In this document: positions 35,105 through 61,554 of the stretch, piece by piece
Layout: each line of letters begins with the position of its first letter
Numbering within the stretch: the stretch's first letter is position 1
Program-made: the position numbers and the translations under genes
Assembly: GCA_964035545.1 (NCBI GenBank)
Contig: OZ037772.1
Span: forward strand, 3,563,538-3,627,537
Length of the DNA stretch: 64,000 nucleotides
Source of the DNA: Bugula neritina
Lineage: Eukaryota > Animalia > Bryozoa
Reading direction: 5' to 3'
The notes under the pieces: generated by a model
Told to the model about the DNA's origin: nothing
Databases searched by the model: none
Seen by the model: the letters and a program-made list of their open reading frames with translations, nothing else

Positions 35105-35221
<117 letters not shown>

Positions 35222-35246
35222 GAAGTAAAATGAGATTTGATTAATA

Positions 35247-35315
35247 TAATGGCATTTATTACTAGTAGTTTCGTACACAAGAACGATGTGCACTCGTCAG
35301 ATAAATTAGCCACTA
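35247..35315 (-). ncRNA. Type I hammerhead ribozyme within a 142-bp Penelope pLTR-like segment (35215-35356)
   Basis: Exact reverse complement of the hammerhead at 63400-63468. Confidence 0.85.
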
Positions 35316-36404: not shown

Positions 36405-36780
36405 ATTTTATTATTATTACTTCTACTACTACTACTACTGCTACTACTACTACTGCTACTACTACTACTACTACTACTGCTACTACTACTACTACTACTG
36501 CTGCTACTGCTGCTGCTACTACTTCTACTACTGCTACTACTACTGCTACTGCTGCTGCTACTACTTCTACTACTGCTACTACTACTGCTACTACTACTAC
36601 TGCTACTACTACTTCTACTACTGCTACTACTACTACTACTGCTGCTACTACTGCTACTACTACTACTGCTACTGCTGCTGCTGCTACTACTTCTACTACT
36701 GCTACTACTACCAGTACTGCTGCTACTACTACTTTTACCACTACTGCCGCTACCACCGCCGCCGCCACCACCACTACTAA
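36405..36780. repeat. (CTA/CTG)n trinucleotide microsatellite
   Basis: Direct reading. It is the source of the poly-L, poly-Y and poly-V ORFs. Confidence 0.95.
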
Positions 36781-39700
36781 TATTGTTTCTACTACAAGTA
36801 CTGTAAATCTTACCAGCAGCAAGTTATATTGGAAACTGTTTGCTCATTTTATCATTGTATTAGTGCAATAACAAAATGTTTATATTTTAATATAGTCAAA
36901 CCTTTTAAAAAACTAGGCTGCTACTTATGAACTAAGAAGTTGTGCTACCCACCTTGATATGCACTCAGCTCCAACACCAAGCAGGTGGTTATGATGCTTC
37001 TCCACAATGGCCAGGCCATCCAGCTGTCCGATTGTATGCATCTACGTAAAAATTATTGGCATATGGTGCAAGAAATGATTAAAAACCAGATAGGTGTGCT
37101 AGAATTTATACAGCATAATATAGAGTAAGGTAAAAGAGAACAGACCGTCAAGTGGTACAGCATAGAAACAATTACTAGCTATTATATGCTTTATAGAAGT
37201 TGGCAAATTGTAGCCCACTAGATATGAACTTTGGTTAGCATTTTATTTTGGCTTTCAGCAACTGCTTTAATCAATAATCTTGGCAAAACCAATATGTTTA
37301 CAAATTAACACCTCCACTAGATAGGTATACAGGTCAAAATATTCCAATTGGTGACATACTAAAAGAAAATGTATATTTATTCATCTTTGAAAGATTGCTA
37401 ATAATTTATAAAACAGCGTCGAAATCAGTAAAGTAACAGCGCAAATAAGTTTATTTAACATCATTATAGGATTGCCTATTACTAGTTTCATGATTTCTAT
37501 TATTTTACTGGTTTTAAACATAATATAGGCTGAAAAAGCAATATTAGTTCTCTCACTTTTGCTAACTACATTGCTTGGAAGGCCATCATAATTAGATCAG
37601 ATCAAACAAATGTGTTGACAGGTAGACTGGAACAGGCCTAAAATTTGCAAGGTATAATTTAAATGTATCTGGCCTGAAATTGCTGAAACTGACAATACAA
37701 TAATATGAGAAACGAGCAGGGTTTTTTATTAAAGCTAGCAAAAATAATTCCTCTACATATAATTAACATACAGTTCATACATATAATATATTACTATGTC
37801 CAGGCAGCAGTGCTTGTTCTAGCCAAAAAAAAAACTGATTTAATGGCTGATTTTAATGGCCATCAAGAAATTTATGGCGCACAGTGGCATTGTCATATTT
37901 TTAATATTCAAAATTACAGTTCTAATCTATCAATCATTTTATCAATACTACTACACTATGATCTACTCCTGCTGCTACTGCTGCTGGTTCTACCACTGCT
38001 ACCATACTGCTGAGTAATGCAAGCTAAGTAATTTAAATTACAATTAAAAAAATTATTGGACTTTCTTTTCTATTACCTGTCCAGTTTAGCATTTCTTTCA
38101 TCATAGCTTGCCATAGTAACTTGAAAATTCACAGGGTTTGAGTTAGACCTATAGAATATACTTACAAGTAGAATGAACCCACAGTTCTGCAATATATCAT
38201 GAAAACATTCAAAATAAAACTATAGGAAAACCAAGTAAATGCTTCTAAGTATTAGCGAAAGTAAAGATGCTATGCAATCTATCCAACATGCAGCCAAATG
38301 TCTCAAAATAAGCATCATGCAGAGTTATAAATATAAAATGTTTCCGAATCAAGGCTAGCAACACATTGTTGTTGTGATAGCAAATTTTGCTTAATAAAGT
38401 AAGGAAACCAGCTTCCCTTGCATGACTCAATTTCTATTAAAGAAAAATTATACTCTCATATAATCGCGAATAATTCAATGCATGTATTTTAATTCAATTT
38501 CATAGTTATTTTTCAGTTTCTAGACATGCTGACTATTGAACCATATAGGCTACTTTAAACTAGTAAAAATACTGAGAGCAATATTAACAAAAAAAATGTT
38601 CACAAAATGTAAAAATACAACTAAAAAATTTTGCGACACCCATTTTAGTCAAAACCCCCCTTATGACTAAAATATGTGTCACGGACCGCGACACCAGGTG
38701 GCCACCCATTTTAGTCACACCCAGTTTTATTTAATAGTAAATCAATTTACTTATATAAAAATTATTACATTCACAGTGATACATTGATGGTCATAATATT
38801 TTATATATCAATATCATCATTATGATACAATTATCACTATTACTATTAGTGTTACTATATGATAACTTATCAATAAAACTTCATAAAGTTCATGAAAAAC
38901 ATTAAATATAACAATTTAATTAAAACTAAATCAATGCCAAAGGGCAAGGTAGAGTCAAAATTAAATAAGCTATAGGGTGTAGGCTATAAGTGTAAGTATA
39001 ATCATCACTATAAAACTAAGTGACTGATGAGTTGGTACTTGGTAGCATAAACATAAAATGAGCATCATCTCATCTCATCTCATCTAATTAATCTCACTCG
39101 GAGCGCTTTGGCTCCTTTATCGAGATGCAGTGGTGTATGAACAATTGTTTAAATTATCAGTAGTAAGGAAGAAAACCATTTTGTCTACGAGATAAGAATA
39201 TAGTTAATTATGCTTTGATTCAAAGCTCAATAGCTAGCTACTGCCAGGAGAGAAAAAAAAGAAAAAAATAAACAAACATAAACTAAAACACCATTACATA
39301 TATGATTTATGACCCTTTGGTTTCTATTTCTGATTTTAGCTTTACCTTGTCTTTTGGCATTGGTTATAGTATTAGTTTGAGTTACAACACTATCAGTTAC
39401 TATGACTATGAGTATGAGTGAGTAGCCTTGCCCGTAGAACTAGGAATAGGAGTAAATCACTAGAAGTAGAAGTGTGGGCATCGGGGTATGACTATGAGTA
39501 TAACTCATAGCCATAGTATGAGTATCTTACTGAAAGTGATACTCATAAACCTCAAGTGATAATCATAATGATACTTAGCATGACATGTAAGGTGTATAAT
39601 ACTCAGTCTCAGTTAATGAGTTATACAGAGTAGAATATCAAACTTTAAGTTTAACTGCTACTTTGAAGTAGGACTTAGACATCACCATTTATGGGTATGT

Positions 39701-42525
39701 CATGCCGTCATAGACTATAGACATAGTATAAGGTTCTAATACTATAAGTATAACTATTACTATTAGTATTACTATTAGTGTATTACTATTATAACTTATA
39801 AGTATAAGAATAACTATAAGTCAGCTATACTGATTACGCAGATTTGTGATTACTAATTTAAAATCACTCTAATCAGTAACTGTTATCACTATTAGTGAAT
39901 TATTCATCATTTTATGATTTTATCATGGTCACAGTGAAACTGATTGAGTAATACTTAGAGTTATAGCTATATTGGTAGTGATACTGCTACTGATAGACTT
40001 AGAGTTAGAGTGTGAGTCAGAGTGAGAGTCACTGAGCTGGAATATTATTGAGTTCGATGGTGAGAGTGATATTGTGGTGGCTCGTGGAGCTACCAGCAGC
40101 ACAATACGCAGGGTCGCGTAATTGACCCGGAACAATGACAGCCAATTAGCAACTTTAGTAGTTAGTAGCAGTAGTAAATTTCCCGCTGTTAGTCAGTCGA
40201 AGTTAGAGTGTTGAGTAGTCTACATGTGTGGAATTATTAAATGTATTTGTATCGTTTTTGTAATGTGTTCTTGTACTTAAAATATATAGTCGTTCACTCG
40301 ACTTATCCTGGTGAAGTTCTCTAGCAAGTAATTAGACTCTCTGGATTGCATATCAACCCTAATTCTGAAAATCATAACAATATTCATATTAATTATAAAT
40401 ATGGTTGTAACTAAGAGTATGAGCAAATGTGACATTATAAGTATTACCATTACTATTAGTGCATTCGTATCAGTATTACTATTAGTATTAGTACTACTAA
40501 TTATTAATCTATTTTCCAATAATAACCATGCATATGCCCTAGCTTATAAGTTTGAGTACGCCTATGGTATTCCAAATTGAAATTGGATCATTATGATTAA
40601 TTTAAATTTAACCAAACATATTTAGTTTGTTTACTGTCGTTCCATACACAAGTCGTTTCGTACACAAAATGAATAATTGATTAATCCACTAGATGACTAC
40701 TTCAATGGTACTAATTTACTTATTTATTGCTTTCCAGTATATATATTGAACACCTCCCATGTCTCTTATTGATCGATGTTTTATATTATTTTTTAATGTA
40801 TTATCTATTACTATTTTGATAAATGAGGTAATATATTTTTTTATTGAACACTTTTTGGTTTTATTTTGATCAGTGCCTCAGTGGTTTAAATTGTAATGTG
40901 CAAGTTGCTTGTGAGCAGTACTGTTTGGCTCATAGTCTCATACATCAAATAATGAATATGTATTTCAGTCAATTCATATTAATGTGTGTACGAAATGACC
41001 TGCACCTATTTATTTATATTAAATATTCTTATTTGATATTGTAGTTTCTTTTACAAACACAGAATTAGATAGCTTTTTAGTACTTGTAGTTTTGCTACTA
41101 CAACTATTGTCATTATTATAGTTGTAGTAGCAAAATTATTATTATTACTGTATTATTAATATTACTAAATATTATTGTTTTTAAATTTGTACTACTTTTA
41201 CTTACTCAGTTACTGAGTGAGTCAGCAACTATAATAATAACCCTTAAAGTATTATTTTCATTACTTAGATTTATACATATACAGCTAAAATGTGAAGCTG
41301 TACAGTATGATTAAGAATTGTTAGTATAGTAAATAAGTAATTCATTGTAGTCATATTCATACTTCAATGTGATACTAATGCTGATGGTACTATTTTTTCT
41401 AATACAATAAATATATGTAAATAAGTATAATCATTTACTATAGCCAAGACATCAAAGACTCACATTTTTAATAATGATGAATTGATTTAGATCATAATTA
41501 AGATCATCATGGTTTTAATTATTTTCATTACCATCATTATTTACATTGGTAATAATATTGCAATCTTCATTACTAGTTACGTCAATTATAATAACTGCAA
41601 AGTACACTTTTGATTGAGAACTGTGAAAATCATTAGTGATAACAAACTACCACTGTAAGTCTGTAAGTGCTTTAGTACTAGATGTACCACAAGTATCAAT
41701 GCTTTAGGTTTTTATGGTGTTAAATACTCATTTTCTTACAGTGATTGTTATTTTATTGGTACGTGTTCTGTTACTTGTGAGTATTAGTTACAATTCCAAA
41801 TGAATAAGCTATTTTAAGTAAATACTCTTATACGTGTGAATATTGATATGAATTATATGTTTCACATTTACAGTTACAGTTTTATTAGTATGATATACAT
41901 TTTATTAATAATAATGATCATAAAACATCATCATTAAAAGTGTAAAGTTTTACTGCACTTTTTGGGACCAGTTGCTGCTTCTGGTAACATAGGTATAAAG
42001 TTTTTTGCTCATTTACCCTAACACACTAAGGTTTGAGTTTTATCTTTATTGCAACATCCAAAAACCTTTGCCGACCTTTTTCTTACAATCAACTATGAAA
42101 CGTTGTGCGTCTATGCTTAGCTGATAAATAACTAATAATATTTGCTTGTTATATGGGGAAGAATTTTTTGCATAGTAATACCTCTCGTGTTTGTATTTTG
42201 ATTTTTCTAATGTCAATATATTTAAGAAATATTCTGGAAAGCATTTTTTGCCAGTTTGTTTCTTCTCTTTATTTCTTGTTCATTTTAACCATGCAATATC
42301 AGTTATTAACTCTATAAGATACACTGTTTTAATTATTCGTTGCACTGGTGTAGCATCTAGGATCGTGTTGATTTTAAGTGGGGTGCAGACTTTTTGAAAA
42401 TTATGGCTTTTGTTTTAAAACCTTTCTTATCCATACCACAAAGTTTTTTTGCTTGTTTACCGCAATGAGTCTGTACACAACTACTAACTATAACTAAAAG
42501 ATATCTGTTTGAAATATTATAGAAT

Positions 42526-45500
42526 ATGGCTAGTGAAAATACCTATTCTACGGCCTTATCACTACTCCAGTCATCACTTAAAAAAAGTATCGCAGAGGAT
42601 AAAGTTAAACATGATGCTGCAAAAAGATTGAAACTTGAAGAACGAAGAGAAAAATACCATGAAAAAAGTAGGTGTATCTTACACTATTTGATAAAATTCT
42701 ATGAGTTTGTTAGCTTTATTTAGCATCAATCTTTGTCTATGCTAAAGAGTCTCTTGCAGCTATATATATATATATATATAAGCTCCCATCTGTTTGTGGG
42801 TTGCATGTTCAAACAATTATCGTGTTTTATAATATCTTTTTATACAAATATGTCCTAAATTGATTTGGAATTTCTGGTTGCTTGACTATGCTTTCATTGG
42901 GCTCTGAAGTCCGTGGCATTTTGAAACAGCTATTTTAGCTGCCTACATTGTAATAACTGAGCTGAAAAAGTTTGAACTGAAATGAAAGCTAAGGTATATT
43001 TATTTCTGTTAATACTTTATAAATAAAGTGCAGCAAGAGTTTCTTAAAATTTTGCTGTATTTGATTCATTCAACATTATATGTAGATATTGCGTTTTTTT
43101 TTATTAGAATTATCACAAGCTGGTAACACAACGTCAAAAGAATACAGTGATAAGCTAACAAGGGTTGTCTCTAAGCACCTAACAGGTTAATTTTTCACCT
43201 TTTATGTAAAGTGAAACTTGTTTGCTGAATGCATGCAGTTGGTTTACTTTATTAGCTGGATGTTTGAAGCACCTTTTTGTAACGTTTATTTTAGATTTTG
43301 CGAATCAGCAAGTACACTCATTAGACAATAATGCTACCAGTTCCAATACAGTAGATGTGGAAAATGAAAACCAATTGAGTGCGTGTAAGTATGCACACTT
43401 AAGGTAAAATAGAATAGTTAGATGTGGTTTGTTTTTAAACTTGAAAATATGTTTCATGTTTCTTTGCCATCAACTCAACACAGAAAGTATTTGTAATTTG
43501 TAGTTGCCAATATAGCTATTTATATGAACACGAATCAAGTAATAATATTTGCAGTTCAACCCTTGTTTGGTACATATAACTTATTGATTTTAGCTTCAAT
43601 GTGCTGCTAGTATAAACAAACCATTTTCATTTGAATTTCCAAATAGATAAAATTGTTGACAAATTATAACATTTCATTTTGCTAGCTTTTGAGCAGTATA
43701 TGTTCTTATTTAATTTTCTCAGATGTTGAAAGATTGCTGGACCTTGTTGGACAGTACTGTTCTTCCCAGCCACAAAGAACACCTACATATATAGAGGCTA
43801 GCTTAGTTAAATGGGACAAAATTCGATCAATTCTTCATAAGAATACAATTACTGGCATGGAAGCTCGAAAACTCTCTCTTAGTATGTGCTTTCTATAGCG
43901 TCGATTTCAATTAACAGTCTTAACCGTCGTGATTGCCATGTTATAACTATATTTTCTATATTGCTGAATGTAAAAGGTTAGCATTTCTAGCCAAGAACTG
44001 ATTTTTGATTTTAATTTTAGGTGATCGGATTACTCTGCTTCCATCAACTTGCCAAGTCTGCAACCAGCCAATCATTGAGAGAGCTACTTATACCCTCAAG
44101 GTCATCACTAATGATGGTAAATTTTACAAGTTCTAAACTCTAATTTAAAAATATTTTCATTCATTCAGGTCATTGTTGCATTCTCCACCACTTTAGGTGA
44201 TGTGGAATTTTCGGGTTTTTTGCTAATTCACATTTTGACCACACATCTATTTTTTGCTTTACTTCCTGTTATTCTAAAGTAAACTTTAAAATGCATGCAT
44301 GTTTTCATTTTTCAGACTCTTTATATTTAGCTTTCAACATTTTACTATAATCTTTCGGTTTTAGGGCTCTCTGAAACAGCGATAAATGTACCTTATTGTG
44401 AGCTGTGCTCGTGGGCACCTGTTCAGCTGTGTGAAGATTTTCCTAAAATCGGGCTGTGGCCACTAACTCCTGAGGGAAAAGTATTTGTGGAATTCAGTTA
44501 CTTGTTGCATAATAGCATCTTGCAGCACCATTCCCCCTCTCTAAGCATGAAAAGCATGCTTTCTAGTCTAAAATTTATATCAGCATTGGATGGCAAGGTC
44601 AATATTCCTAATTTTTTGCTGCTTTTATTCAAATTTCTTCATTTATTATTTGTCCAACTTTAAAATCTAGTATTCATTTATACACTTATGCTGAATGTTT
44701 ACCTCTGCTAAAATGAATACTGAGTTTCAGTTAATATCACTGTTCTGATTACCCTTATATAGTTTTACTGAAAATCTTATTGATGCAGAAGCCTCCCTTC
44801 TAATAGTGAAAATTGACTAGCTATTTGATGCTCTTTCAAAATTTAATAGTTATGTTGACAGCATAAAATCAATAACTGGGAAAGGCAGCTGTTATACATA
44901 ATTTTGTGAATCTTTTTTCAATGCTTTGTAATAGTCATTTAATCTTAGGTTAGTTATTTAGTTGCTAAAGTTATAATTGAATATCATTATCTACAGATGG
45001 TTATCATTTTCTTTGCTTTTTATTTTTAAATTGGCTGGTTAAGTTATCTAAGGGTCAAGAATTTGACGAATAGCTTTAACAATGTATTGCAACTTAGTAA
45101 ATTTTCAATTTGGCCAAATTTAGTTTCTGGCTGAAAATTAAGTAGGTAGCCTATAATAGCAACTTTTGTTTATTCTTACAGCAAAAGTTCTCTATGTCCC
45201 AGGACACCTTCAACTGCTGTTTCCTGGAATGGAAAAAGGCAGAATCTTTTTTCTTCCATCATGTTGCTCAAACCTTTAATTGTCCCTGCTGCGGAGCTTC
45301 ACCACACGCAGTTCATATTGATGGCAACATGAAGCTTTATAAATATAAAGCAGCTGGAAGGTAAGTTTCTCTTGGGTAGCACAGTTTTTGTTCTGTCTCA
45401 TTTATGTGCATGTAATATTGAATAGGTAGTTGTGTGCTTTACTTATTATTATTATGATTGTTTTATTTTTAGAGTAACAGTTGAAGAGGCAGTGCCGTCG

Positions 45501-48500
45501 CATCTTTTCTTAGATGACGGTGAAGTGAAAAATGCAGTTGAAAAGATTTGTGTTTCGAAAAATGTCAGATAAAGTTTCAAAATAGTATACTAATATGGAT
45601 ACGCTTTCAAATATGCTGGTTTTACTATTTGGTGAAATTTACCAGTTTGATGTTCATAGCACTTATTCTACCTTTTTTATTTGTACCTTTTTAATCTAAG
45701 TAAATAAGTGAGCTATTATGTTATCTGATTTTTAGAAGTACTCAGTTGATGGCCACTGTGGAGAGACTGCGTGGAAAGCAGCAAAGACGTCTTCCGGCAG
45801 TTTCTCAAAAAAAAGTGTGACTGGCTGTATGATGGCCACTTGCCGTCATGCTCTAGTGCTCAAGGCACTGGACATGGATAGGGGGGAAGTTTTCGCTTAC
45901 CCATATATAATGCAGGTGAGTTAATTAATGCTCTCCTAACCTTTATTCATGTGTTTTCAAAATGTGTTGTGACTTTTTGTAAAATTTAACTCTGATCAAA
46001 GTACATTTAAAAATTTTACACGTCAAAGCTTCATTTTTTTAATTATATGTTTGAACAATTTTAGAAACAGTTTTCTGGCGCGAAGTTCATAGCTACTGAC
46101 GTCATGTGCCAGTACTACCCCTGGCTGTCCAAAATGGACGCGCAGCGTGCATCCTCTCAAAAATATTTTTTGAGTGTGATGCACGCTAAAGCCCACACTT
46201 GGACATGTCAGGTACTATGCTTCAGTAAATCTTTTAGTTTTCAGTAGCATAAGTAGAAGCAATGCATTTACATGTAAATGCCAAATTTTTTAGCCTTTGA
46301 ATCTGATGAGTATTTTGCCTTTAGCTGCCTCCATGCAAATTTTGGTTTAAAATATAGAAGCAAACTTTTCATGTTAACTATTTTTTACATGATTGGTTTC
46401 AAGTTGTTTAGGCTTAAATTGAAACATCCCCAGGCCGCAGCTGCAATGTTGTTTCTATTTAAAGACTAGGTGGAGTGGCAGGGTGAAAAAGGGAGTAGGA
46501 CTGAGCACTGGCGAGACCACGGAGCAAACAAACAGCTACATGTCTCGGTGTGGTTTGATAACGAGACATATGACTGCTAATGGTACCCAATTTATATTCT
46601 CTTTGAAACATATACTTGTTAACTACGTGCTGTTTGAATGTATATTAAGTTCATTTGATATATAACCTATTGAAACTGTTTCAAAATGCATTGTTTAAGG
46701 TGTACAAGTACCATTATGCCTTTTTAATGCTTTAAAGTATTGTATTGGTTTTTCTAGGTCGTCGTCAGCAGCTCGAGCATGCTGCTGGCTTCTGGAATTT
46801 CAGAAAAATAAAGAAGATGCCGGAAATGTTGGCAAAAAAGATAAAGCAGGTGTTGTATACAGTTATGGAAAACTTATTTTATTAAAAAAAACCTTGTGTT
46901 CAATTAAGTTTAGTCAACATCTAAAACTAACATTTCTGAAGTATTATAGCTTGTATATATTATTATTTATGCAATCAAACATTTAAAAGTGTCTTATTTA
47001 TATATTTAAAGGGTTTTTCATTCGGAATTTCATTGTAATATTGGAGTAAATAATAGCTTAGCATCATTCTTCCATTTAGTTGCATTATATTATTTTTATT
47101 TTACTGCAGTGGTTGCTAAATCGATTATGGTAATTTATTTAGTATTCTTCATTTTTTAGCTATTTTTCAGACTGCAGCTGTTGATTTTGACCAAAACTAA
47201 AAAATTGTCAATAAATAATCAAGTTTCTTTTTAATCCTTTTCAATTTTCGTGGATAATGTTTTTTTACCTAATTTGGATTTTCGGATGATCATGAAAAAC
47301 CGTCTGAAAATCCATAAGTAGCTAAAGCCTGCAGAATGTATGCATTAACTTATTATTATGGTTTCGTTCTATGCATTAACATTGAAGAAAAGTACATTGG
47401 CATAATGCATGCTTAGTAGTAGTTATTGAAACAAATTGAATTATCGAGTTGAATATTTAAATGTGATGATATTTATGTTTCTTAAATGACTAATTATTAT
47501 TAGATTGAAATGGAACTGCCGAAACGGCATGCCACTATGGTAGAGCTGAAGAAATCTGAAATTCCAGAGGCCAGCAGCATAGAAGAGGTGATGGAGAGGA
47601 TTTGCTCCTCCTCGCCAGGTAAAGCTTTCTTATAGAGTTGGTTAGTTGTTAGTCAGCAAATTGTTAGGTAATCTAATTTGCACACAAATTTGACAGATTA
47701 AAACCCTTTAGATTGCGTATCTAATAGAATATATGTTTATCTATACTGTTCTATCAAGTGGATCAGATTTTCTCCATCATACGTTATGAAAATCAACAAA
47801 TCTTCTTTGTTTATATTTATAATAGCTACTATAGGGATGTTTAAGCAGACCTAATTTGTTTAGCTTCATAAATGTTTGCTTTATCAAATTCAGTTATATT
47901 TCAAGAATACCTCTGCTTAAGATACAGCCTGAAAACTTAAATTTTTTCCAGAGATTGCGGTTTTGTAATCCACAATTTTTTCGAAAAATCAATTGTTTGG
48001 AATTTGAGATCAAATTTTAAATTAAATGTGTTGTGTTGTGGAATGTGTTGTGCTCCTGCCACATTGTTAGACAAGTAAGATTAAATATACATATAATTAA
48101 GATTGTAGAATGTATGACTGTAACGTATTGGAGCTAACAGGTAACTGACATTAAAAATAAATGTAGATGAAAAATTACAGAATATTAGTATGGCAAAAAA
48201 CTGTATATAATGAGTTTAGGCAAATAGACATCAGAATAAGAGTTAACCCAGTATGTAAAACGTGGTATGTCATAAGATGTCTATGTGGTGTAATGATAAG
48301 GCTAGTTCAATACATAGCAGAATAAACGCTAAACTGTATATTTCTATTATTAGATTTGACTGCAGATCAAAGAAAATTGGAAGATTTAGCTTGCACTATA
48401 CAGCGGTTTGATGCAAACATTCTCAAGTTAGCAGGTTGGCAAACTTGTAACTTTTCTAATTTTTAGTTCGGTGTTGTGATAATTTGTTATGGAGGCAACA

Positions 48501-49445
48501 TGTGTATATATCTCATTTTATTTTTTTTACCAAAATAAAAAATAGCATCTAACTGGGAAGTTTTCATCTGAGACCCATCCTATTTTCTGTAGCGAGAAAT
48601 GTTGTCCGTCACATTACTGTACCTATTTTTAGTCAAATTTGCTTTTTTTGCGGTTGCTCAAAACTTTAAATGTTTAGTGGCAACTATCATTCATATGTTT
48701 CATAATTTAGACTCATCAAAGGGGCGTGACAGGTTGCGGAGCAAACGACGTGCGACATATTTGAAGCTTCAAAAGGCTGTTGATGAGTATGTGCAAAATC
48801 ACCCGGACCTGTCTCGTACAGACTTTGACCAAGCCACCTCCATGATCTTTCCATGGACAGGCTCGGAAATCAAGCTCTCTGTATCCCCCAATTTACTGAA
48901 GCTGTTCGATGCATACCATCTCTACAATAGAACAGTGGAAGAATTGGATATATTAGGTGAAGAGCGCGTAAAATTGCTTGAATATGCAGGTATAGTAGTT
49001 GTATATTTCTATTTTCCAAAATCAGTTGTTTTAATTTTTTGCAGTCTGTAATTTCATGTGTAACTCAATTTACGATTCTATCTATTCTTGTGACAAAACT
49101 GTCTTTTTATGTCATCACTATGTCAGTTTTCTGTCAATGTTGCCACCATATATTTCTTGTAGCACGCATGGCAGCATCCTTAAGTGATGGTAACCATAAT
49201 GATGACACCATCTCCACCCAATTTAAACAAGCCTTTCTCAAGTCTTGTTATGCCAACTTCTCTGGTGCTGATCAAGAGGTTGTATCTAAATGTTGGCAAA
49301 TCTTTAGCTTAGATTGTAAAGTTTTTTTTATATTTGTGTATGTTGAAGGATCTCTGACTAAATGTAAATGAAAGTTAATATAATATATAAGAATATTTAA
49401 ATTTTGTTTTACAACAAATTTTATGTGTATATGTGCTGAATTGAT

Positions 49446-49499
<54 letters not shown>

Positions 49500-49814
49500 G
49501 TATATATATGTATATATATGTATATGTTTATACATATATATATATTTAATAGTGCATAAGTACCGCATTCCAGGGATCCTTTAAAAGATAAACTAATAAC
49601 ACATTGCACTATTTGAAACTGTTGTGTGTGTTTTTTAATCTTCAGTAGAAATATAACTATAATATTTTTGGTACCATAATCTATTTCAAAACTTGTATAG
49701 TGGCTAACGTGGGGTGATTAAAAAATACTTCATTTTGTTTTCCAGTGTGAAGAAATTATAGATGATGATGATGACTTGCAGCCGATTTATTCTGACTCAT
49801 CTGACGAAGACTAA
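42526..49814 (+). CDS. KDZ transposase with N-terminal CxC-type cysteine cluster, 17 exons, ~754 aa
   Basis: Exons 42526-42667, 43108-43185, 43295-43384, 43723-43881, 44021-44116, 44365-44597, 45182-45360, 45473-45563, 45736-45915, 46065-46211, 46465-46582, 46758-46849, 47504-47618, 48354-48434, 48711-48989, 49163-49278 and 49746-49814 splice in phase with no stop. Motifs: CQVC..CELC..GLWPLTP, FNCPCC..VHIDGNMKL, TGCMMATCRH..MDRGE, TDVMCQY, MHAKAH.WTCQ, GVGLSTGETTEQTNSYMSR, FWN.RK, FPW, NRTVEE, and an acidic tail. Confidence 0.9.
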
Positions 49815-50471
49815 AGCTTTTTTCTTGAAACCTTTTTTGATAGTTTTTGGATATATTTTTCAAGCCACTATCTATCTGAGTGAGGATATATTTTAACTAG
49901 CTCTCTTCAATAATAATTTTATGTCTAGCTTAAAAATACCTATGATTGTGCTTGCTTGCACACTGTATATGTTCGAGTTTCTTCCAGGTTGTTTTTAGTC
50001 ACATGATGTACTGTCGTTGCTAATGAAACTTGCTTATGAGTAACCAATTATCCTTTTTCTACAATACTTATTGCTGCATTTTAGTAGTTGTTTTTATATT
50101 AAAATAATTTTGAAAATTGTAAAGCTAGTTTTTACTGATGTGTGTGTGTGACTGGCAGAATACACATAATCTGTTATCAAACATGTATTAAATGTTATTA
50201 GCGATTCCAAAGATGAGAAATTGCATACAGTTTTCTAGTTTGTTCTGCCCTGTAATTGTAATCTAAAAAGGAACTTTTTACTCTTATAATATTTTTGTAA
50301 CCATAATATGCTCTAATTCAACATTTGAAGTAATGTTTAACACATCCTATGTTGGCTAGAATTGATTTGCAAGGTAACTTTCACCTTTGTCTTGAAAGAA
50401 TATCAAACTGTTTGGCATACAATTATTTGTTTATTCACAATATATATATATATAATATGAAATATTTAGGT

Positions 50472-53400
50472 TCAGGTTCTTTTGCTGCATCCTTGTCCCT
50501 AAAATACAAGAAATAATAATAATCAACAAGGAATATGCAACTTCAACCAGTTGATATCTTTAAATCACAAATGAACAGTTACCGGTTTACTTAGTTAAGC
50601 TGCAGCATAGTGTAACTAAATGCTACTTTAATTTTAAAAGTGTCTAGTCAACTATTTGATAATGTGAACAGCTGAAGTAGTACACTCACCATAAACTGTT
50701 TGTAAAACACTGTGTGACGCACATTTGTAATTGGCTCCCAGGTTGGAGTCCTAGAATATAAACATCAACAACTTTTTCAAACTGGAAGACCAAAAGCACC
50801 CACCAAACTTCTGAAGTTGAAGAAAAAAAAAATCGGTCTAGATCTGTGACAAGTTACAAAGACATTCCATTGTACCTCCCTCTGTAATTTAAATTTTTGT
50901 CTAACATTTTATGTTATGACATTGCTTACATGCAAGTTCTAATTTCTAGCAAAAAGTAAAAAAAAATGCAGTTTATAAAAAAACATGACCTAATTACACA
51001 ATGCTTCCAAATAAACAGTCTTCTAGTCAAATGAATTTAACCACTAATTTTCAATCTTACGATAACAAATGGCATACTCAAATAAATTGGGTAAGCTATT
51101 TTACATTTTTATACCGAGCTCTATCGTCTGTGTATGCATGCATGTGTTATACTTTGCTAGTGGATCATTATGAAAGTTCAATGCAGAATTATTCATACTC
51201 CATGATCATTCTTGCTGGTCTCAATTCAACTTACCTGTACCCCTTCCATTTAACAAGTGCTTCCCTTCCTTTAACGTTAGTAATATTTTCAATCACCCAA
51301 AGTTTTTTGGTACCTCCTTCAACAAGAAACACATAAAACATTATATTTATATGATGATTTTATAACAGCTTTTTAAACATGGGTAAATAATGCGATTTAT
51401 AAATATGTGACATTTGCAAAGAGTTTCTGAACATTTTGTTAGACAAATTAGTTCATGAAATCTTTTATACGTGTCATGCATATACTCAAAAAGCTGTGCA
51501 AACAATTACTTCCAACTTTAATTTTCTTGATTTACAAAACCTTGTATTATATAGCATTGAGCTAATATTACAATAAATATAAAACTGATGCATCAACCAC
51601 AAATTGTAAAGTATTATAACTACAATATAAATATATGCAAGTATGTAATAAGCTTTGTCTAATTTGGTTACAATTTGTGAGACAATAATTATTTTGATTT
51701 TAAATAAAGTTTGAGGATAATTATCAAAGACGTACGTTTTGTTTTTTGTGAACTCTTCTTTCTAGTAGTGGCTGAGGGCACACTGGTGGAGACAAAGCTG
51801 GTTGAAGGCACACTGGTTGAGGGCACACTGGTTGAGAGACCTATGGTTGAGGGCACACTGGTTGAGAGACCTATGGTTGAGGGCACACTGGTTGAGAGAT
51901 CTATGGTTGAGGGCACACTGGTTGAGAGACCTATGGTTGAGGGCACACTGGTTGAGGGAACACTGGTTGAGGGCACACTGGTTGAGGAAACACTGGTTGA
52001 GGGCACACTGGTTGAGGGAGCACTGGCCGAGGAAACACTGGCTGAAGGAAGACAGGTTGAAAGCACACTGGTGGAGACAAAGCTGGTTGAAGGCACACTG
52101 GTTGAGGGCACACTGGTTGAGAGACCTATGGTTGAGGGCACACTGGTTGAGAGATCTATGGTTGAGGGCACACTGGTTGAGAGACCTATGGTTGAGGGCA
52201 CACTGGTTGAGAGATCTATGGTTGAGGGCACACTGGTTGAGGAAACACTGGTTGAGGGCACACTGGTTGAGGGCACACTGGTTGAGGGAGCACTGGTTGA
52301 GGGAGCACTGGTTGAGGGAACACTGGCCGAGGAAACACTGGTTGAGGGAACTATGGTAACTGGTTTATCATCTTTGTCTAGTTTATTATAGCTTTCCATG
52401 ACTGTCATCTTGTTTGGATCGTAAACTTCCTTTACTAAATACAATAAAGTAAAATTACATTCAAACTCTGCACAAATTTTTTTTAAAAAGTAATAGAAAA
52501 GTAGTTTTACAACTTTTATGGTCTATATATGATAATCAAATATTTGCATGTTTTATATCTGAAACTACATAAAGAAATGTAAATATCTTATGTAAAATGT
52601 ATTTATTGGCCATAGGTTTAGTGAAAAATACGAGTAGAAAGCTTGAGTTGCCACCGTCAATAAATTATAAATAAACATACAAAGTGCTCTATATTACATC
52701 TAGCTCTAAAAGCATTTATGCATCTTACTTGAACTTAAAAGCACTGCTGTCATAGCTTTAGTAAGTTGTCCTAAGAATTCAGATGACACTCCACTGCTTA
52801 TCACTGTGACCTTCTTATTTGAGTTAGGCTTTATCATAAAAGTAACTGTACCAAAGCCAGCTCCAAGAGCGAATGATGACTAAAATATAAAATAGTTTAA
52901 ATTATTTCAACAATAATATGGACAAAAGAACAGCTATGCACTTAGTAATTAATTCTATTTGTTATTATTATAAGTAAAATAACTTATACCGCATCAAATT
53001 ATTGTTTACAGAAAGCAATTTTTACCAAAAATGGTAAATAAGCTACTGGCACAGCGTTTTAGTTATGCATGCATAGTAAAATACCTTTCTCATTTTTTGC
53101 TTAAACTGATATTATATTTAAGCATTACAATATTGCAGAAGTTAAAAGATTTTATTTGATGGCGTCACACATGTATGCAGATCAACTTTGTTTTCATTTT
53201 CCTATAATTTGCTATTATTATAGCATTCTAGAGAACAAAATCGCTTACCATGTTACACATCCTCTGCCTTGTGTAGCCGTTACCTTTTTTATGTTGAGCA
53301 CCATACTCAAACTGTCTAGCCAATGTCTCCTGTTTAGTTTGTAGTGTTAATGATCTCATAGAGCTCCCTAAATATATACACATATATATCCAATTATACA

Positions 53401-53618
53401 TTACTTAAGATGCTTTAAATTAAACTTTTTAAGACATGTATGCAGATATAGCTTCATATGTAAAAAGAACCTGGGTATAATTGTATACCAGACAAAATGA
53501 CTTATCTAAATGCATATACTTTTCATTTGACCTGTGAACGCTGCAGTAAAATCTTTGAAGTCACAACTTTTATAGTAAAATATTTCGTGTGTGAGTGAGT
53601 GTGTGAGTGAGTGAGTGA

Positions 53619-53694
<76 letters not shown>

Positions 53695-55525
53695 CACCAA
53701 TGAAAGCAAAGTAGAACAATTGGAAGCTCTATTACCATAAGTAATAATGTACTCACCACAGTTGGAGCAATTGACTGCATTTATTGGTATAACGTGTTTG
53801 CAGCTGGGGCATTCTCTTTTGGTAACTAAAAAACCAAGATAACAATAAACAAGTTTTAACTGCAGTATGGCCTCATGAAATTTCTGGTGAAATTGGTGCT
53901 AACTATATATAATAACTTACCAGATGATAAATTATACTAAATCCTTTTTAAAGACCTATAAATGACTATAGGATTATGATATAAGATGGTTTTACTTGAA
54001 AATTTCATGTCTATTAATAGCTAGAGTTATAATTTTAAGTATAATATTGCAAAAAAGTTTAATTGCATGCAAGAAACATCGTTTATTTAAAGAGATCATT
54101 TATCTATAATAAACGCTTGCATAATAGCTATTATAGCATTTCTTTTCATTATATAGCACATTGAAAAGTTAAAGTGCTATACCATAATTGTCAGTGAGGA
54201 TTTGAGAGCACAAAAATACTTAGGCTATTTCAAAATTATGTTTTTAATTTCTATTGCAATTAACAAGAAACAGCAAGGAAGTGTATATGAATTATATTTC
54301 ATTCTTGAGGATTTATATAAGAATGCCCAACTATTTTATATAAGTAAATCTACTATCTCATAATTATTTTTAAATTTAGAGCCATAGATGAAATTAAACT
54401 CATATGACACGTAAAACAAGAAACTGTACTGGTTTTGTGGTTAATGCTAAAGTAATTTGTTTTAGCATAACAAATTGTAGACATTCTATACAATCTAGAT
54501 TATGATGCCTGTGCTCACATAAAACGAAAGATTGCTAAACTAATTATGTATAGCAATCCTGTTTACTTACAGAATAGTATATATAATTGACCACAAACAA
54601 CTCAAGACCTATGATCTGGAAAACTATATGCAAACAAAGAAAAAACCTCAGCCCATAACTATTATATTATATTCCATATGTTGTTGTAATCATGCAACTA
54701 TACAACTATTTCAATAGATGATACTTGGTCTACTATATATATGTTTTTTGTATATAAAATATTGTCTTAGCTTAAATTATGTTTTATTGAGAATTTTTTG
54801 CTACTTTAAATAAATTGGAAAAATAAATGAAAAAATTAGCTACAAAAATAAAAGCTATATAGCCAAGTTTTAAAGTATGCTGGATAAAATAGCATTGATT
54901 ACCTAATTAAATTATGAGAACTCAAATTACTTATATAAGTACGAGCCGATTCGATTGCACTTGCAGTTTGCCCTGCGCGTCTGGTATAACATGGCACAAG
55001 TATAATAATGGCACTATGGTAATTTAAGGGCACAAATAGAAAAGTGAGAAAGAATGCACACTGATGTCAAAATTGTTAAACCCCAAACTCAAACCTTCAT
55101 TTCCAAACCTAAACCCCATCCCACCCCAAACCATAACATTGAAAATGTGCCATTATTTGTACCTACTTTGCCATTTGTGCCTTTATTATCAGTATTATCA
55201 TTACCTGTGCCATTTTTACCTGTGTCATTTTTACTGCAAACTGTAAATAGTAGGTATTTGTTGATTGAAGCTCAAAAAGAATTTACTACACTTGAAAATA
55301 ATTATTATGATATAAGCAGCATACATATATACTTGGCTTGTCTAGCATAAATTAATTTAAATTAATCAATCATAATATATAATAATCAAGTTATAAAATA
55401 TCCTTTATTTTATTATACTTACTGCATTTGCTGCATTTTGCAGGAGGCCTTAGGCTGGGTGGTTGCATAAAAGCTTCTGCACACAAATTGCAATGTGCAA
55501 TTTTAATTTTTGTTGAGCTATCCAT
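50472..55525 (-). CDS. Double zinc ribbon + Pro/Ser/Thr-repeat linker + C-terminal chromodomain protein, 8 coding exons, ~436 aa
   Basis: Exons 55525-55423, 53825-53757, 53367-53249, 52879-52729, 52434-51736, 51316-51235, 50750-50690 and 50498-50472 splice in phase. The N-terminus reads CNLC..CSKC..CPSC..CSNC. The C-terminus reads WVIENITNVKGREALVKWKGYRTPTWEPITNV. Confidence 0.85.
51770..52350 (-). repeat. Coding 15-bp tandem repeat encoding (PSTSV)-like pentapeptides, ~38 copies
   Basis: GGTTGAGGGCACACT units on the + strand, inside the 699-bp exon. Confidence 0.9.
53588..53692. repeat. (GTGA)n/(GT)n intronic microsatellite
   Basis: Direct reading. Confidence 0.9.
54985..55235. mobile_element. 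Degenerate MITE-like foldback; a related half-copy lies at ~57205-57295
   Basis: ATGGCAC repeats on the left are mirrored by GTGCCAT repeats on the right, around a CCTAAACCC-type core. Confidence 0.45.
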
Positions 55526-56181
55526 GCGTTTTACTGTGAAATCTAAAACAATATAAATTTGCAATGAACATAGCGTTATATAAAGGTTGCAGGAATACAG
55601 ACTGGCATAATTTGGAATAGAAAAACTAAATAATACTTATATAATATAAGAATAATCATACTGATTATGAATAGATAAAAAGAACCATGATGCTTTAAAA
55701 CTGGTAATTATGTGCAAAATCATACAAAAACATACAACAGTAATATTATTACATAATGTAACCATGCATGATGTATCAAAATAAAGAGTTATTTTTAATT
55801 TCTATAAAACCTCACGCGGTCATACTAATAACTAATAGTAATATGGTAAACAAAAACATAATAAATTGATGATAAATTATTTAAATATCGTGACTAGTTA
55901 TGATTGATTCAAAATATTTAAAATAAAGAATATACTTCAAAAAATTAAATAATTTCCTGATAAATTCTTAGTACCTCAGTATTGAATGCTTCAAGTGTTT
56001 CTAATCAATTACGTATAAGCTATTCCGTTGCTGCTGATCTGGCAAATTTAGCCTAACGCAACATTGAGCCATCTCATTGGTTCAAGCATACAGCAGTGGT
56101 TTAGCTTTCTATTAGCTATAACAAACAAAAAGAGAATAAATTGTTTGCGGGTATATAATAACAAGACTTATGTGAAATATT

Positions 56182-56252
56182 TGCCACTACTGGGAATCGA
56201 ACCCGGGTCCTCAGGCTTGCAAGCAAGTGCGCTACCATTACACCACGGAGGC
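56182..56252 (-). pseudogene. tRNA-derived pseudogene or SINE head (71 nt)
   Basis: GCCTCCGTGGTGTAATGGTAGCGCAC...GGGTTCGATTCCC...GGCA has intact A and B boxes and a T-arm, but the anticodon and acceptor stems pair poorly. Confidence 0.7.
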
Positions 56253-59200
56253 TACTGGGTTAACACAACACTACAACTTATAACAATTAAAGTTGTTACA
56301 GGTCTAGAAAATTAACTATAACAATAATTTTGGAAAAGTTGTAAAGTCAGCAAAATCAAATTAAACTCTTTAAAAATGTTTCAAACAAACATAATGGATG
56401 CAAGAAAAAAAAGCCAACTTTAAATTGAAAGCAAAACAAAATACTTTTCAACAAAATTTGAAGAAATGGGAAGAAAGTATCAAGTGTCCATATATATCTG
56501 TCATTCGTGCCTACTTTCTTATTTACTGCATTTCTACTTGTGCTACACCTGGTTTTATAACAATTCTTATTAGCACAGAACCACGATATCAGTAAACATT
56601 AGCAAGCCTATAAGTTACTCATCCAATTTAATTAAGTGATGGACCTGTTTTCGAGTGCAAAGAACAAAGTGAAAAACGTAATTTGTTTTAGCACATGATG
56701 GTCAAAGTGTTATCTTTTTCAGTATTGTGGGTTTGAGTGTGCGATCAAGTTATTTCACAACGCGTATTCTAAATCAACTTCGCAAGCGTAGTTCAGATTA
56801 CAATATATTTATACAACAATACACAATCTAAAAACTACATCTATTCAAACACATTAACAACTACCCAGCACAGTGATTAAAGTTTGCATGTCTACTTGAT
56901 CATAACTGTTACGCGGGAAGTCACTGTTGCTAATTATAGTTCATGATTCATATTGGCGGGTTTCTGTCTCGAATCATCTTCTTAACACACTTAGTGACCC
57001 CGTCCTGCACTTGGAAGGGAATTAATATTTCCCCCTTCTTCGTTATGACAGTAGCTCCACGAGCCACCACAAAAGCTCTCGGTTACAATCCATTTTTTTT
57101 TTCATTTGTAAAAATGGCTCCAGTAAAAGTGGCACATGTAATAAGAACCACCTGCATCGTATATAACTGATATAATATATACAATACAAAATACATATAC
57201 AAAACCATTATTACCTGTGCCATTATTGCCTGTGTCATGTTTAGCTGTGCCATTTTTACCTTTATCATTTTTACCTCTTCCATTTTTACCTGCATGGGCA
57301 ATTTTGGTTTCATCCTATATTGCAGATATAAGAGGCTTATCCTATGGTTGAAGCTAGACTAAATTTCCCACTTGGATTCTTCTCACCTAAAGGCTTCCAA
57401 AGTTAGACTCTGCACATCAACTGGCGTATCGATTGCTAAATAGCTAATATGCCTATAATATAGCTATAATTATAGCTATATTAGCTAATAAATTATTTGG
57501 AATAATAGCCTACTTTTCAAGGATTTGTGTGAGGCAAAAAACCGTAATACATTATTATTAGACATTATTTTTGATGAATATTTATAAAAAAAACAACAAG
57601 ATGTAGAGAATTTCAAAATTAATAAGTTGATGCAGATCAAAAAAAATTTATGTTTCAAATAGCAAACAATTGATCCAAGTTTATTTGAATATAGATTTAT
57701 TTCATTAATATTCAAACGAATTGTGCATAAAATATATGTTGCACTGAAATTAATTAATAATTAGCATCTAACTGGGATGACGCTGCCAATTTTACCTAAA
57801 GTTGTAAGAAACTATAACAATGCATGCACACAATGTTGAAGGTTCTTGACCTTCATGATTCATAGAGTGTTTACATCAATACTAATATAATAATAATATG
57901 ACAGAAGAAAGTAAGGAATCATATAACCATGCAGACATATAGATGCAAAATGTAGAATTTAGTCTACCAAACAAACTAAATTTGAGGTCAACAATAAAAA
58001 GACCATAAAACTACTGCATTTTACCACATTATATCCAATCTAAAAAGATCTACAAATAAAATGATCTTTAAAAAGCTCCATAGTAAACTTAGAACGGCAT
58101 TAGCACCTGTTTCTAATTAAAGTGTGTGGCTATTTGAATCAAATTAGTGTCTGGAAAAAGTATTTACAGCTGTAATTATAGCATAACTCATCATGGTGGG
58201 AAAAGTGTTCAATCTTTAATTGCAATCACTATATCTATAAATGCAAGTGTATCCTCCTGCCAGATAGTCTGTTAGCTAGCAAGCCTGTGACTTATAGTAA
58301 TGTAGACCCCTATATTATGTGCTCATCACTGAAGTGTGAAGTGATGCACAGTGTTCACTACTTAAAAAGAAGTATACCATTTCTAGTGTATAAATCCACA
58401 ATTTATATAAAATCTAAAAGTCATTGCTTTTTTATTCAGATATCATGTTTTCCTGCTAAGATATTTTACTGGTACCCCAAAAATCAATTTTTGAGGCAAA
58501 ATTAGCCAAAAATGTGCAGTTTTTTCTATAACTTTGCAAAAGAATGAAAAAATACCAAAAAAGCTGCACTGAGAAAAAATAAGATTCACACCATAGTTTT
58601 TAAATTTTGATTCTAGTAGCCTTCAATTAAATAAGATTGTTTTTACTGGTACTGAATTTTTACACAGTTACAATGCAAACCTCTGCAGGGCAGTTGCAGC
58701 TAAAAAGTTACCTGTAACTATCCTGTGCAGACAGGTATTTCAAAGACATTTAATCAGGACTGGCCATATAGAGACAAGACTTTTTTGAAAGTGTAACTGA
58801 GATCTCATTTTTATTGACTGTATTGTGAAAGATAAGTAGTTGAAGAATCCCTGACACACTTTACTTATGCAGTACTGAAATATTACTATGTATGTTAGTT
58901 TTCATTTACATACTGTTTTAAGGTTAGATGTCTAAACAATTTTGTTTTATAATGAATTTTGTGCGAGTATGTACTGAAATGATTTGGGATTTGTAATCGC
59001 CTTGACCTTTGACCTTTGAATGCTTGTTAGATGCTGCACTGCACAGAGATGGCTTGAAGGTTTGAACTTTCAATTTTCAGTCAAATGAAATACACAAAAT
59101 AAATACTACACTTCACTCACTAGTCAGCACTTAGTCCAGCAACTAAGGGTTATATGTTCTAATACGAAACCAGATATTAACAGAATTGTTCAAGGCAAAC

Positions 59201-59549
59201 AGTACTCACTGTGTACTCACAAGTGTTTCACTGATGGTTGTAAAATATAACTATACTGGTATGAGTACAGACTCTTATCACTGGCGCATCTTGTTTAAAT
59301 TTGCATGTACAATCATGAATATATTATACTTTGTATGAATATATATGTATAATTTTTTATGCACAAACATAAATCCATATATAATTATTGATTATTAAAG
59401 TAATAAAAATGAAATGTTTCTTGTTTACCTATTTTAATTAAATGCATATATTATACACACATACACACATAAATAATATATATCTATTCAAATACGTTAT
59501 GATTTTAATAAACATGCAAAGCCTAGCCCTCGCTTATAATTACAATACA

Positions 59550-59674
59550 TATGGCCTGCGGATGTTTAATGAATCTTGAAAATTTATTTTAAAAACAAAA
59601 AAAAATGTTGTGGCCCCCAGCTCAAGCTAAAACTTGCAGACTGGCCCTCGGTTTGAAAAGGTTGGACACCCCTG
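59550..59674. mobile_element. End fragment of a non-autonomous hAT element
   Basis: TGGCCC subterminal repeats followed by AAAAGGTTGGACACCCCTG. A similar isolated end, GGTTGGGAACCACTG, lies at ~33856-33870. Confidence 0.55.
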
Positions 59675-61554
59675 CTGTAAATAAATCAAAGCCCCCTGGG
59701 GGGGGGGGATTAGAGATTTAGAATGCCGGGTTTAGGTTGAGGGGTTTAAGGGCTGGTGGCTTGAGTTTGGACTTTGAGTTAAATTAATGTTAATTTTTCC
59801 AAACCACCATTTAAAACCACACACACGCACACACGCACACAAGTTAGAAAATATGTATATGTTTTTTTCAACTATGTTTTAAACGGAATACAAACATGTA
59901 AACCACAAAACAGTGATTGTCTTCTTTCAATGCCATATTTTTGATCACACTAAGAAAGATGGTGGTAATGCAACTCCTAAAAGCATGTTGCATTATGTCG
60001 CTCCTCTGTCGGCAAGTATACCATTTGTATTAATGTATGAAGTCTTCAACATATATTTCAACTTATTTTTGCAAGTAACTCATGACAGTAAACTATATGC
60101 TTCTTTTTCTTCATGTGTGTGTGCGTGTGAGTGTGTGTAAAAATGCAGCACTCATAATAGTTGTTATTTTCTGAACAGCTTACAATAGCTACAGTTATAT
60201 GTAATTGCATAGGAGTGTTGCAAGTGTTTGCTAAAAGATGGTATGTAAAACATGCTGACGAATTTGTTGTGGAGAAATTTAAATAATTACTTAGCATTTA
60301 GCAATAAAATTGTTCATGTACAAATCAGAAACACCAAGTTGTATGCATATATTTTAAATAGTATGCATGAATTTGCAAAAAAAATGTAACTTAAACTATA
60401 CCAAAGTTGTGTTTCATTAAGTTAGGAGATATTTATCAACAAAGCAAAAAATTAGAACTTTATATACTTTTACTATGAGTATATGTTTTATATATGTGCT
60501 CATTTTGTATATACTGCAAAATATGTTATATACAATGTTAAACCAAAAGAATCAGAACTTTATAGTGTAATACAGGCACATCTACAATGTTAACAAATAT
60601 AACATTAAAAACAAGAAACAAAATTGTTCGTCTCTTCTACTTGACTTTTTACAAGCAAAAAATTATTATTGCTGCAAACTAAATTTAAATGTTGAGGTTC
60701 GTAAAGTTATATGTTTGTTAAATTATTTCACATTGTTTATATTCTACAAATAATTTCTACATATTTTCTAAACGCAATATCTTTTTTCGTCTACTACATG
60801 CAGCTCATTATATGCATATGTATATTATACAACGCAGCATAAAATTTTATAATACTTAGCAAAAAATGCTGAAAAATATTAAAATTTTACAAGATGGTAT
60901 TATATTATGGTGGCAATAAAATTGTAATAGACTATTATTTAATGAGAAGACAATTATGTTTTTATAATGAAGATTGATAAATTTATAATATGAGCTGAAA
61001 TTGAGTGAGAAGACAATTATGCTTTCAAAATACTTACAAGACTAAATTCTTATCCAATAGCTACAGTAATTAATATCCTTTGTTTGAAACAAAGTCTAAA
61101 AGGAGCGGATTTAAATAAAAAATTTAGACCTGCATTTGTTAAAACTTTTCAATCAAAACTATTACATTATATTATTTTTTCTCATAACTCCTAGCTCCTA
61201 AAACCTTTCGCATAAAAAAATTAATTTAGAATGTAAAATACTGCTAGAAATTGCCATGTTAATGTCAACCCTAACTGTATCCACCACTTGTTATAGTTGT
61301 TACGATCGTTACTTAACCAATGAAGTTGAACTGGTTGTACCTTCAGCCAATCAATGACTTATTTCAATTGCGCCTCGTTAGGCGAGGGTCGTTGACGAAA
61401 TCTATATAATATAATACAAATCCCATTACCACTGATTGACCCGAAGTTCTCTACGACTTCTATAGTGGTATAGGATAATAGATATACTGAAATATACACA
61501 GGTTAAAGCTAGAAGATCAAAATATAACAAAAAGGTAGCATTGTAATTAATTGG

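Follow-up and report, generated by a model that had tools for sequence, protein, structure and literature searches.

Introduction

PIF/Harbinger elements consist of two genes, one for the transposase and one for a Myb/SANT DNA-binding protein, the latter being conserved and required. In the chromoviruses (Ty3/gypsy), the chromodomain of the integrase directs integration to heterochromatin, as stated in the passages of PMC6839031 and PMC12477816 that cite Gao et al. (2008). Among the KDZ (Kyakuja/Dileera/Zisupton) DNA transposons, fungal elements carry genes for TET/JBP dioxygenases, and the survey of Kojima (2025; PMC12730594) also assigns 8-bp target-site duplications (TSDs) to Zisupton and CA..TG ends without terminal inverted repeats (TIRs) to Kyakuja. 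Here, we analyzed a stretch of 64,000 bp from the bryozoan Bugula neritina (assembly GCA_964035545.1, contig OZ037772.1, positions 3,563,538 to 3,627,537 of the forward strand), to which we refer as the window. It contains a KDZ transposon and, very probably as cargo of this transposon, a gene encoding a protein with a chromo-like domain.

The locus has something in common with each of these systems. As in the chromoviruses, a mobile element is associated with a chromodomain, and the logic proposed for it would be tethering to methylated histones. However, chromoviruses fuse the chromodomain to a retroviral-type integrase, whereas in B. neritina it is encoded by a separate, intron-containing gene with paralogues in the host, and the DDE-type KDZ transposase is encoded on the other strand. 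The chromoviral analogy drawn in a preliminary description of this DNA therefore holds for the proposed function but not for the arrangement, the gene being separate and having chromosomal paralogues with identical intron positions. Fungal KDZ elements belong to the same superfamily and are likewise large, with an extra gene related to epigenetic marks, CA..TG termini and, as in Zisupton, an 8-bp TSD; in contrast to them, the Bugula cargo is a protein of the reader type rather than an enzyme, the element resides in an animal, and no TET/JBP gene is present in it. As in PIF/Harbinger, the transposase is accompanied by a second, separately encoded protein, which has a putative module for binding nucleic acid or protein. 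Unlike in Harbinger, Bugula relatives with a transposase of their own lack the accessory gene, and this absence from related autonomous elements sets the locus apart from an obligatory two-component system.

Results

A young KDZ transposon carries the gene

The 5.2-kb region of the gene occurs five times in the genome, and outward extension of these occurrences led to borders at positions 35357 and 61489 of the window. The element and its transposase were located as follows:

35349..35356, no strand: left 8-bp TSD, AAATATAC, the same 8-mer as at the right end
35357..61489, plus strand: KDZ (Zisupton-like) DNA transposon of 26,133 bp, one of five copies, with sharp alignment borders and about 99% identity
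61490..61497, no strand: right 8-bp TSD, AAATATAC, identical to the left 8-mer
42526..49368, plus strand: multi-exon KDZ transposase gene (approximate extent), with Pfam KDZ PF18758

The termini of the element read 5'-CAGTG...ACTG-3'; there is no long TIR, just CAGT..ACTG and a few further matches, and in this respect the TIR-less CA..TG ends of Kyakuja resemble those of the Bugula element. Perfect 8-bp TSDs were found at four of the five long copies (window, C8b, C2 and C5), and 8-bp TSDs were also present at two of three examined related elements of about 17 kb. The catalytic exons of the transposase lie around 45146-45361, 45736-45930, 46065-46247 and 46423-46665, and are 100% identical at the protein level across the long copies. 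One exon (45763-45930) matched KDZ PF18758 with 28.9 bits, above the cut-off of 26.6, and weaker colinear exon matches spanned positions 126-165 and 172-206 of the profile. The 8-bp TSDs and the KDZ domain, taken together with the published survey (PMC12730594), therefore identify a Zisupton-like KDZ transposon, and the identity of about 99% among the long copies indicates recent movement. The eight-exon gene described below is thus cargo of a young, 26.1-kb Zisupton-like KDZ cut-and-paste transposon.

Eight small exons encode one multidomain protein

The sequence around the gene is AT-rich eukaryotic DNA. When pieces of open reading frames (ORFs) from the minus-strand translation were joined at canonical splice sites, eight minus-strand exons were obtained (55525..50472). 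All seven introns are of the GT...AG type, with phases compatible throughout, and the spliced product comprises 436 aa, followed by a TGA stop:

55423..55525, minus strand: exon 1, start codon and CxxC pairs 1-2 (C12/15, C31/34), conserved in paralogues
53757..53825, minus strand: exon 2, CxxC pairs 3-4 (C40/43, C54/57), with zinc-ribbon matches below cut-off
53249..53367, minus strand: exon 3, start of the middle module, about 70% identical to paralogues, with no Pfam match
52729..52879, minus strand: exon 4, middle-module core, GAGFG..TFM.KP....TVI.SGVSSE, with 27 of 50 columns invariant
51736..52434, minus strand: exon 5, end of the middle module, Pro/Ser/Thr (PST) repeat linker and basic patch RKKSSQKTKR
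51235..51316, minus strand: exon 6 (82 bp), N-terminal half of the chromodomain, containing W387, W404 and Y407
50690..50750, minus strand: exon 7 (61 bp), C-terminal half of the chromodomain, TPTWEP..., and C-terminal helix
50472..50498, minus strand: exon 8, last 8 codons and TGA

The protein is thus laid out as an N-terminal zinc module with eight cysteines, a middle module of about 110 aa, a PST repeat linker of variable length and a compact, chromodomain-like module at the C-terminus. In line with the preliminary description, the small exons form a single protein and the chromodomain is divided over the 82-bp and 61-bp exons: the peptide quoted there was recovered exactly, with the arginine codon at the junction split into AG and G. 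The four N-terminal CxxC pairs claimed there were located at the positions listed, and the PST linker placed before the chromodomain proved to be an array of 30-bp tandem repeats (51769-52351) within exon 5. Overlooked at that stage were the middle module (aa 58-170, approximately; exons 3-5), the variable length of the linker and the boundaries of the transposon. Support for the joins comes from the NCBI gene models of two orthologues of the chromosomal paralogues, from another assembly (EB796_006230 and EB796_008118), which were made independently and join equivalent exons in the same way.

The C-terminal module matches chromodomains

The C-terminal 55 aa matched Pfam Chromo (PF00385) with 22.0 bits (E=1.6e-4), the curated cut-off being 25.1 bits, and the corresponding segments of EB796_006230 and EB796_008118, both of which bear the UniRef name 'Chromo domain-containing protein', scored 18 bits each. 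In a single-sequence phmmer search against all PDB sequences (E<=1), all 46 matches were chromodomains, CDYL2 being the best (E=0.0014). The same was true of the 49 matches to the family chromodomain profile, the best being HP1 with E=1.7e-5, and ten of them had E<=0.0016. The three aromatic residues assigned to the cage beforehand were borne out, given that W387, W404 and Y407 align with Y24, W45 and Y48 of HP1, and that no member of the family deviates in the W/W/Y residues of the cage or in the TWEP motif.

A model of residues 214-264 of EB796_006230, made with AlphaFold2 (AF2) from the family alignment, reached a mean predicted local distance difference test (pLDDT) score of 75, with strands at positions 9-16, 19-24 and 31-34 and a helix at 35-50; the full-length protein, modelled from the single sequence, reached 39. 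When the 51-residue model was compared with the PDB by Foldseek, the top 40 or so matches were chromodomains (LHP1, Rhino, HP1, CBX7/4, MPP8, CDYL2), with TM scores of 0.5-0.6. The proposed chromodomain assignment hence stands insofar as the matches are specific to chromodomains, albeit with a Pfam score below threshold (22 vs 25.1) and a modest fold match. With the chromodomains of HP1, Polycomb-CBX and CDYL proteins (PDB 1KNA, 6MHA, 2MJ8, 7VYW), the module shares the cage aromatics and the KWKGY and TWEP motifs, as well as, in the model, the layout of three strands plus a helix. In contrast to HP1 and CBX, the Bugula protein is about 8 residues shorter in this region, falls below the Pfam cut-off and has neither a chromoshadow domain nor other partner domains of HP1/CBX proteins.

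On these grounds, we give about an even chance to the C-terminal module being a reader of methyl-lysine. Several of the results count against such an assignment. Every Pfam score for the domains of the protein lies under its curated cut-off, and the fold was modelled on the orthologue of a paralogue rather than on the transposon copy. For the 51-residue model, the Foldseek E-values were >=0.08 and the VIA-align Z-scores <=4.6, with chromo and chromoshadow domains ranking highest. In addition, two loops of the domain together lack about 8 residues in comparison with HP1, 4 being deleted from the beta1-beta2 hairpin and 4 from the loop that follows the GY motif. These are the two loops that touch the histone peptide in HP1. 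Their shortening, the appearance of cpSRP43 chromodomains among the sequence matches and the lead of chromoshadow domains in the VIA ranking (Z 4.6) would fit a module which has the chromo-like fold but uses it for protein-protein contacts, as in cpSRP43 or chromoshadow domains, or for contacts with nucleic acid, with no reading of methyl-lysine. We nevertheless regard such a module as quite improbable, as the cage aromatics and the TWEP motif are kept family-wide, and identity amounts to 30-40% with bona fide readers vs 14-17% with chromoshadow domains.

A recent origin of the domain from a chromoviral integrase was considered unlikely, because the same intron splits the domain in all paralogues and the best matches are of the HP1/CBX/CDYL type (integrase chromodomains were not directly compared). 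No integrase was seen with the gene, although no search was aimed at integrases.

Zinc module and middle module

The eight cysteines are spaced C-x2-C-x15-C-x2-C-x5-C-x2-C-x10-C-x2-C. The second half of this module matched DZR (PF12773; 23.9 bits, E=4.7e-5), Zn_ribbon_3 (PF13248; 21.9 bits) and UPF0547 (PF10571; 22 bits), all below the curated cut-offs and none of them preferred. The module has CxxC...CxxC knuckles like those of generic zinc ribbons, and its second knuckle pair matches all three families at E-values of about 1e-4. Of the resemblance to UPF0547 suggested in the preliminary description, the zinc-ribbon signal was therefore retained, but it is a generic one (22 bits, the cut-off being 29), on a par with DZR and Zn_ribbon_3. 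Judging from its spacing, the module could alternatively be a cross-braced C4C4 module. Pattern matches of the profile to ZFAT and CTCF in the PDB raised a C2H2-finger identity for the N-terminus, which was rejected, the family having no histidine ligands.

For the middle module, Pfam gave no match and the ESM Atlas only leads under 0.8. When 1.84 billion representative proteins were searched with a profile of exon 4, only four related sequences were retrieved, one of them being EB796_006230; apart from sequences of the Bugula type, there was just a weak match to a repetitive, vertebrate-like protein of 3997 aa (E=4.6e-4), which was judged to be spurious. A scan of metagenome loci gave no match.

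Chromosomal paralogues and selection

Besides the copies within the transposon, the same eight-exon gene was found at four paralogous loci, which amount to three or four chromosomal paralogues:

C3:21.047-21.051 Mb: paralogue locus with the same eight-exon gene
C3:18.506-18.510 Mb: paralogue locus with the same eight-exon gene
C3:18.359-18.362 Mb, inverted: paralogue locus C3c, with the same eight-exon gene
contig C298: paralogue locus, near-identical to C3:18.506-18.510 Mb

All four share identical intron positions and phases and the same order of modules, with protein identities of 50-70%. No KDZ sequence was present in the 10-kb loci around the paralogues, and genome-wide no KDZ match lay near them. 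EB796_006230 (338 aa) and EB796_008118 are NCBI hypothetical proteins from the other B. neritina assembly (GCA_010799875.2 for the former). The EB796_006230 locus is conserved between B. neritina lineages, being colinear with C3:21.05 Mb over 10 kb at 80-90% identity, and in the other assembly the gene is flanked by a cytochrome P450 gene and a gene for a 1543-aa ZNFX1-like helicase. Both proteins have the architecture and intron positions of the window gene, with identities to it of about 52-60% over the middle module and 58-75% over the exons of the chromodomain. Unlike these chromosomal genes, the window gene resides in a mobile element, lies about 1.3 away in synonymous distance (dS) and has a different repeat linker.

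Comparison of the transposon copy with each paralogue gave a nonsynonymous distance (dN) of 0.31, a dS of about 1.27 and a dN/dS of 0.24, with values of 0.17-0.20 for the chromodomain. For the branch leading to the transposon copy, three-taxon subtraction of pairwise distances yielded a dN/dS of about 0.21. Between the C3a gene and its orthologue in the other assembly, dS was 0.20 and dN/dS 0.14; of 46 residues in the chromodomain, a single one differs, and this replacement is conservative. These low dN/dS values indicate that the family is functional and that its transposon-borne member has not simply decayed since divergence, although part of the transposon-side branch may predate the capture. 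As judged from the sequences, the family was shown to be restricted to Bugula and to have conserved chromosomal members.

By module, dN between the transposon copy and the paralogues was highest for the zinc module (0.35-0.42), followed by the middle module (0.27-0.32) and the chromodomain (0.23-0.26). The greater divergence of the N-terminal and middle parts would suit an anti-silencing decoy, i.e., a transposon-borne paralogue competing with chromosomal readers for methylated tails or partners and thereby blunting heterochromatin on the element, in analogy to transposon-encoded anti-silencing factors and to the TET/JBP-carrying KDZ elements of fungi. A decoy would also be in line with the existence of conserved host paralogues that have the architecture of the window gene and from which it has diverged, and with the epigenetic modifiers carried by KDZ elements elsewhere (PMC12730594). 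However, nothing here distinguishes a decoy from targeting, and we hold it to be improbable.

Two side observations concern these loci. The C3c paralogue, an inverted duplicate (C3:18354400-18364399), lacks 4 aa of the middle module, and its dN/dS vs C3b and C298 is about 0.8-1.0; by its sequence, it may be decaying. At the EB796_006230 locus, intervals 1-4079 and 20061-28542 hold the P450 and ZNFX1-like helicase neighbours.

Copies with and without the gene

In four of the five long copies, the gene is intact: the start codon is present, every splice site is retained and the frame is open. The length of exon 5, which is divisible by 3 in every copy, amounts to 699, 609, 429 and 444 bp in the intact copies and to 879 bp in C5. 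In C5, the beginning of exon 1 is missing, and a 4.8-kb insertion interrupts the last intron. In genome-wide protein searches, the gene came up nowhere outside the five long copies and the paralogues, and in the examined relatives of about 17 kb no trace of it was seen. At least 20 such relatives match the long copies at their ends, over 3.1 kb and 1.65 kb (35357-38470 and 59840-61489), at 93-96% identity, and they encode their own KDZ transposase with 38-60% protein identity in the catalytic exons. The combination of similar ends and divergent transposases suggests modular or chimeric transposon families that swap internal parts.

Insertion sites and further features

The window copy of the transposon sits between repeats. 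Its left flank (28700-35356) consists of repeats, of which all scored outside copies (more than 80) lie on contig C8, at about 0.13-4.2 Mb; it is a chromosome-arm-specific repeat field. Immediately beyond the right end, a 500-aa ORF on the minus strand (61555-63057) may belong to a retroelement. Farther out, at 27058-28638 and 12328-13422, there are long tandem arrays of MLYSILCYTVYYVIQY units and of SL/PL units, open in several phases; the frames in them are mechanical ORFs, not genes. At the C7 copy, a repeat of about 318 bp (C7:12147362-12147680) abuts the right end of the transposon and probably accounts for the missing TSD there. With 98-99% identity and hundreds of candidate copies (782 at first look), it looks like a very young family similar to short interspersed elements (SINEs).

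Within the transposon, a nested 1.4-kb repeat with many copies at 91-94% identity occupies 58264-59680. Two further features accompany the gene:

50430..50435, minus strand: AATAAA polyadenylation-type signal, about 37 nt past the stop, identified from sequence only
54981..55237, no strand: high-copy repeat resembling a miniature inverted-repeat transposable element (MITE), nested in intron 1 outside the gene proper, with dozens of copies at 71-86% identity

Some copies of the MITE-like repeat elsewhere are adjacent to each other in inverted orientation.

Discussion

In the interpretation that we favour, although we put it a little short of an even chance, the element may carry its own chromatin reader, either for tethering or for modulating its own chromatin state. 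In the preliminary description, the protein was conceived as a tethered bivalent adaptor, in which the zinc ribbon would bind DNA or transposase and the chromodomain H3K9me/H3K27me. In our version, the chromodomain would dock on a methylated lysine of a histone tail, and the partner bound by the half of the protein formed by the zinc and middle modules could be the KDZ transposase, DNA or some factor of the host. The reader would then tether the transposition machinery to silent chromatin, in a choice of target like that of chromoviruses, or, alternatively, influence the chromatin state of the element itself. An epigenetic accessory of this kind is plausible, because fungal KDZ elements carry TET/JBP genes. 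That the role of the gene benefits the transposon is a tentative proposition, on balance doubtful.

A number of observations weigh against a transposon-serving reader. The sole public run that contains the locus is of genomic DNA, in which intron depth is uniform and spliced joints are absent; the single joint in this run and the contigs is a change of repeat number in the PST array. The sequence to the left of the C7 copy is unique, and insertion is therefore not restricted to repeats. Among the five copies, exons differ by 0.65% (4 of 612 sites) vs 0.3-0.6% for introns, so that no constraint is visible; the differences are too few for constraint to be demonstrable among the copies. The dS to the paralogues is nearly saturated. 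Finally, at least 20 related KDZ elements of about 17 kb have the same ends and no such gene. As these relatives, with a transposase of their own, succeed and spread without it, the reader is dispensable for mobility, the gene is an optional accessory rather than a core component, and the version in which it is an obligatory partner of the transposase is weakened.

The coverage of the locus by DNA reads only would also be met with if the exons were chance ORF fragments flanked by splice-like sites. We find this hardly credible in view of eight exons in perfect phase, a structure shared by paralogues under purifying selection, and annotated orthologues. Chance assembly was rejected because four other copies of the transposon and four diverged paralogous loci have the same arrangement of eight exons.

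The main rival to a transposon-serving reader, which we nonetheless regard as unlikely, is a passive passenger: a chromosomal reader gene, or a paralogue lost since, would have been transduplicated into the KDZ element and would hitch-hike with no role in transposition or in the chromatin of the element, any constraint predating the capture or reflecting a host-type function. The exact sharing of intron positions with the chromosomal paralogues, the lack of visible constraint among the five copies, the C5 copy already devoid of its exon 1 start and the 20 or more copies reached by same-termini relatives without the gene are all in line with such a passenger. However, a dS of about 1.3 to every genomic paralogue and a branch dN/dS of about 0.21 argue against recent capture followed by neutral decay, as do the splice sites, the cage residues and the frame of the fast-changing linker, which are retained in four of the five copies.

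Going beyond a chromatin reader of the element's own, a more specific proposal is that the KDZ transposon steers its integration into methylated chromatin, or counters its own heterochromatinization, by means of a separate reader, and would thus be an independent two-component system with a chromovirus-like logic. We consider this proposal still more unlikely than the passenger, and attach the same low probability to its corollary that a lineage-specific family of host genes was the source of the reader, or else its recipient.

If true, an animal KDZ element with a stand-alone chromodomain protein would unite the themes of chromoviral targeting and of epigenetic cargo in fungal KDZ elements. 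The presence in one genome of subfamilies with and without the chromodomain gene, but with the same ends, would provide a tractable natural comparison, which could reveal whether the reader alters the landing or the silencing of a DNA transposon. Furthermore, the locus brings to light a bryozoan-specific family of candidate chromatin readers with an uncharacterized middle module, which has so far gone unstudied.

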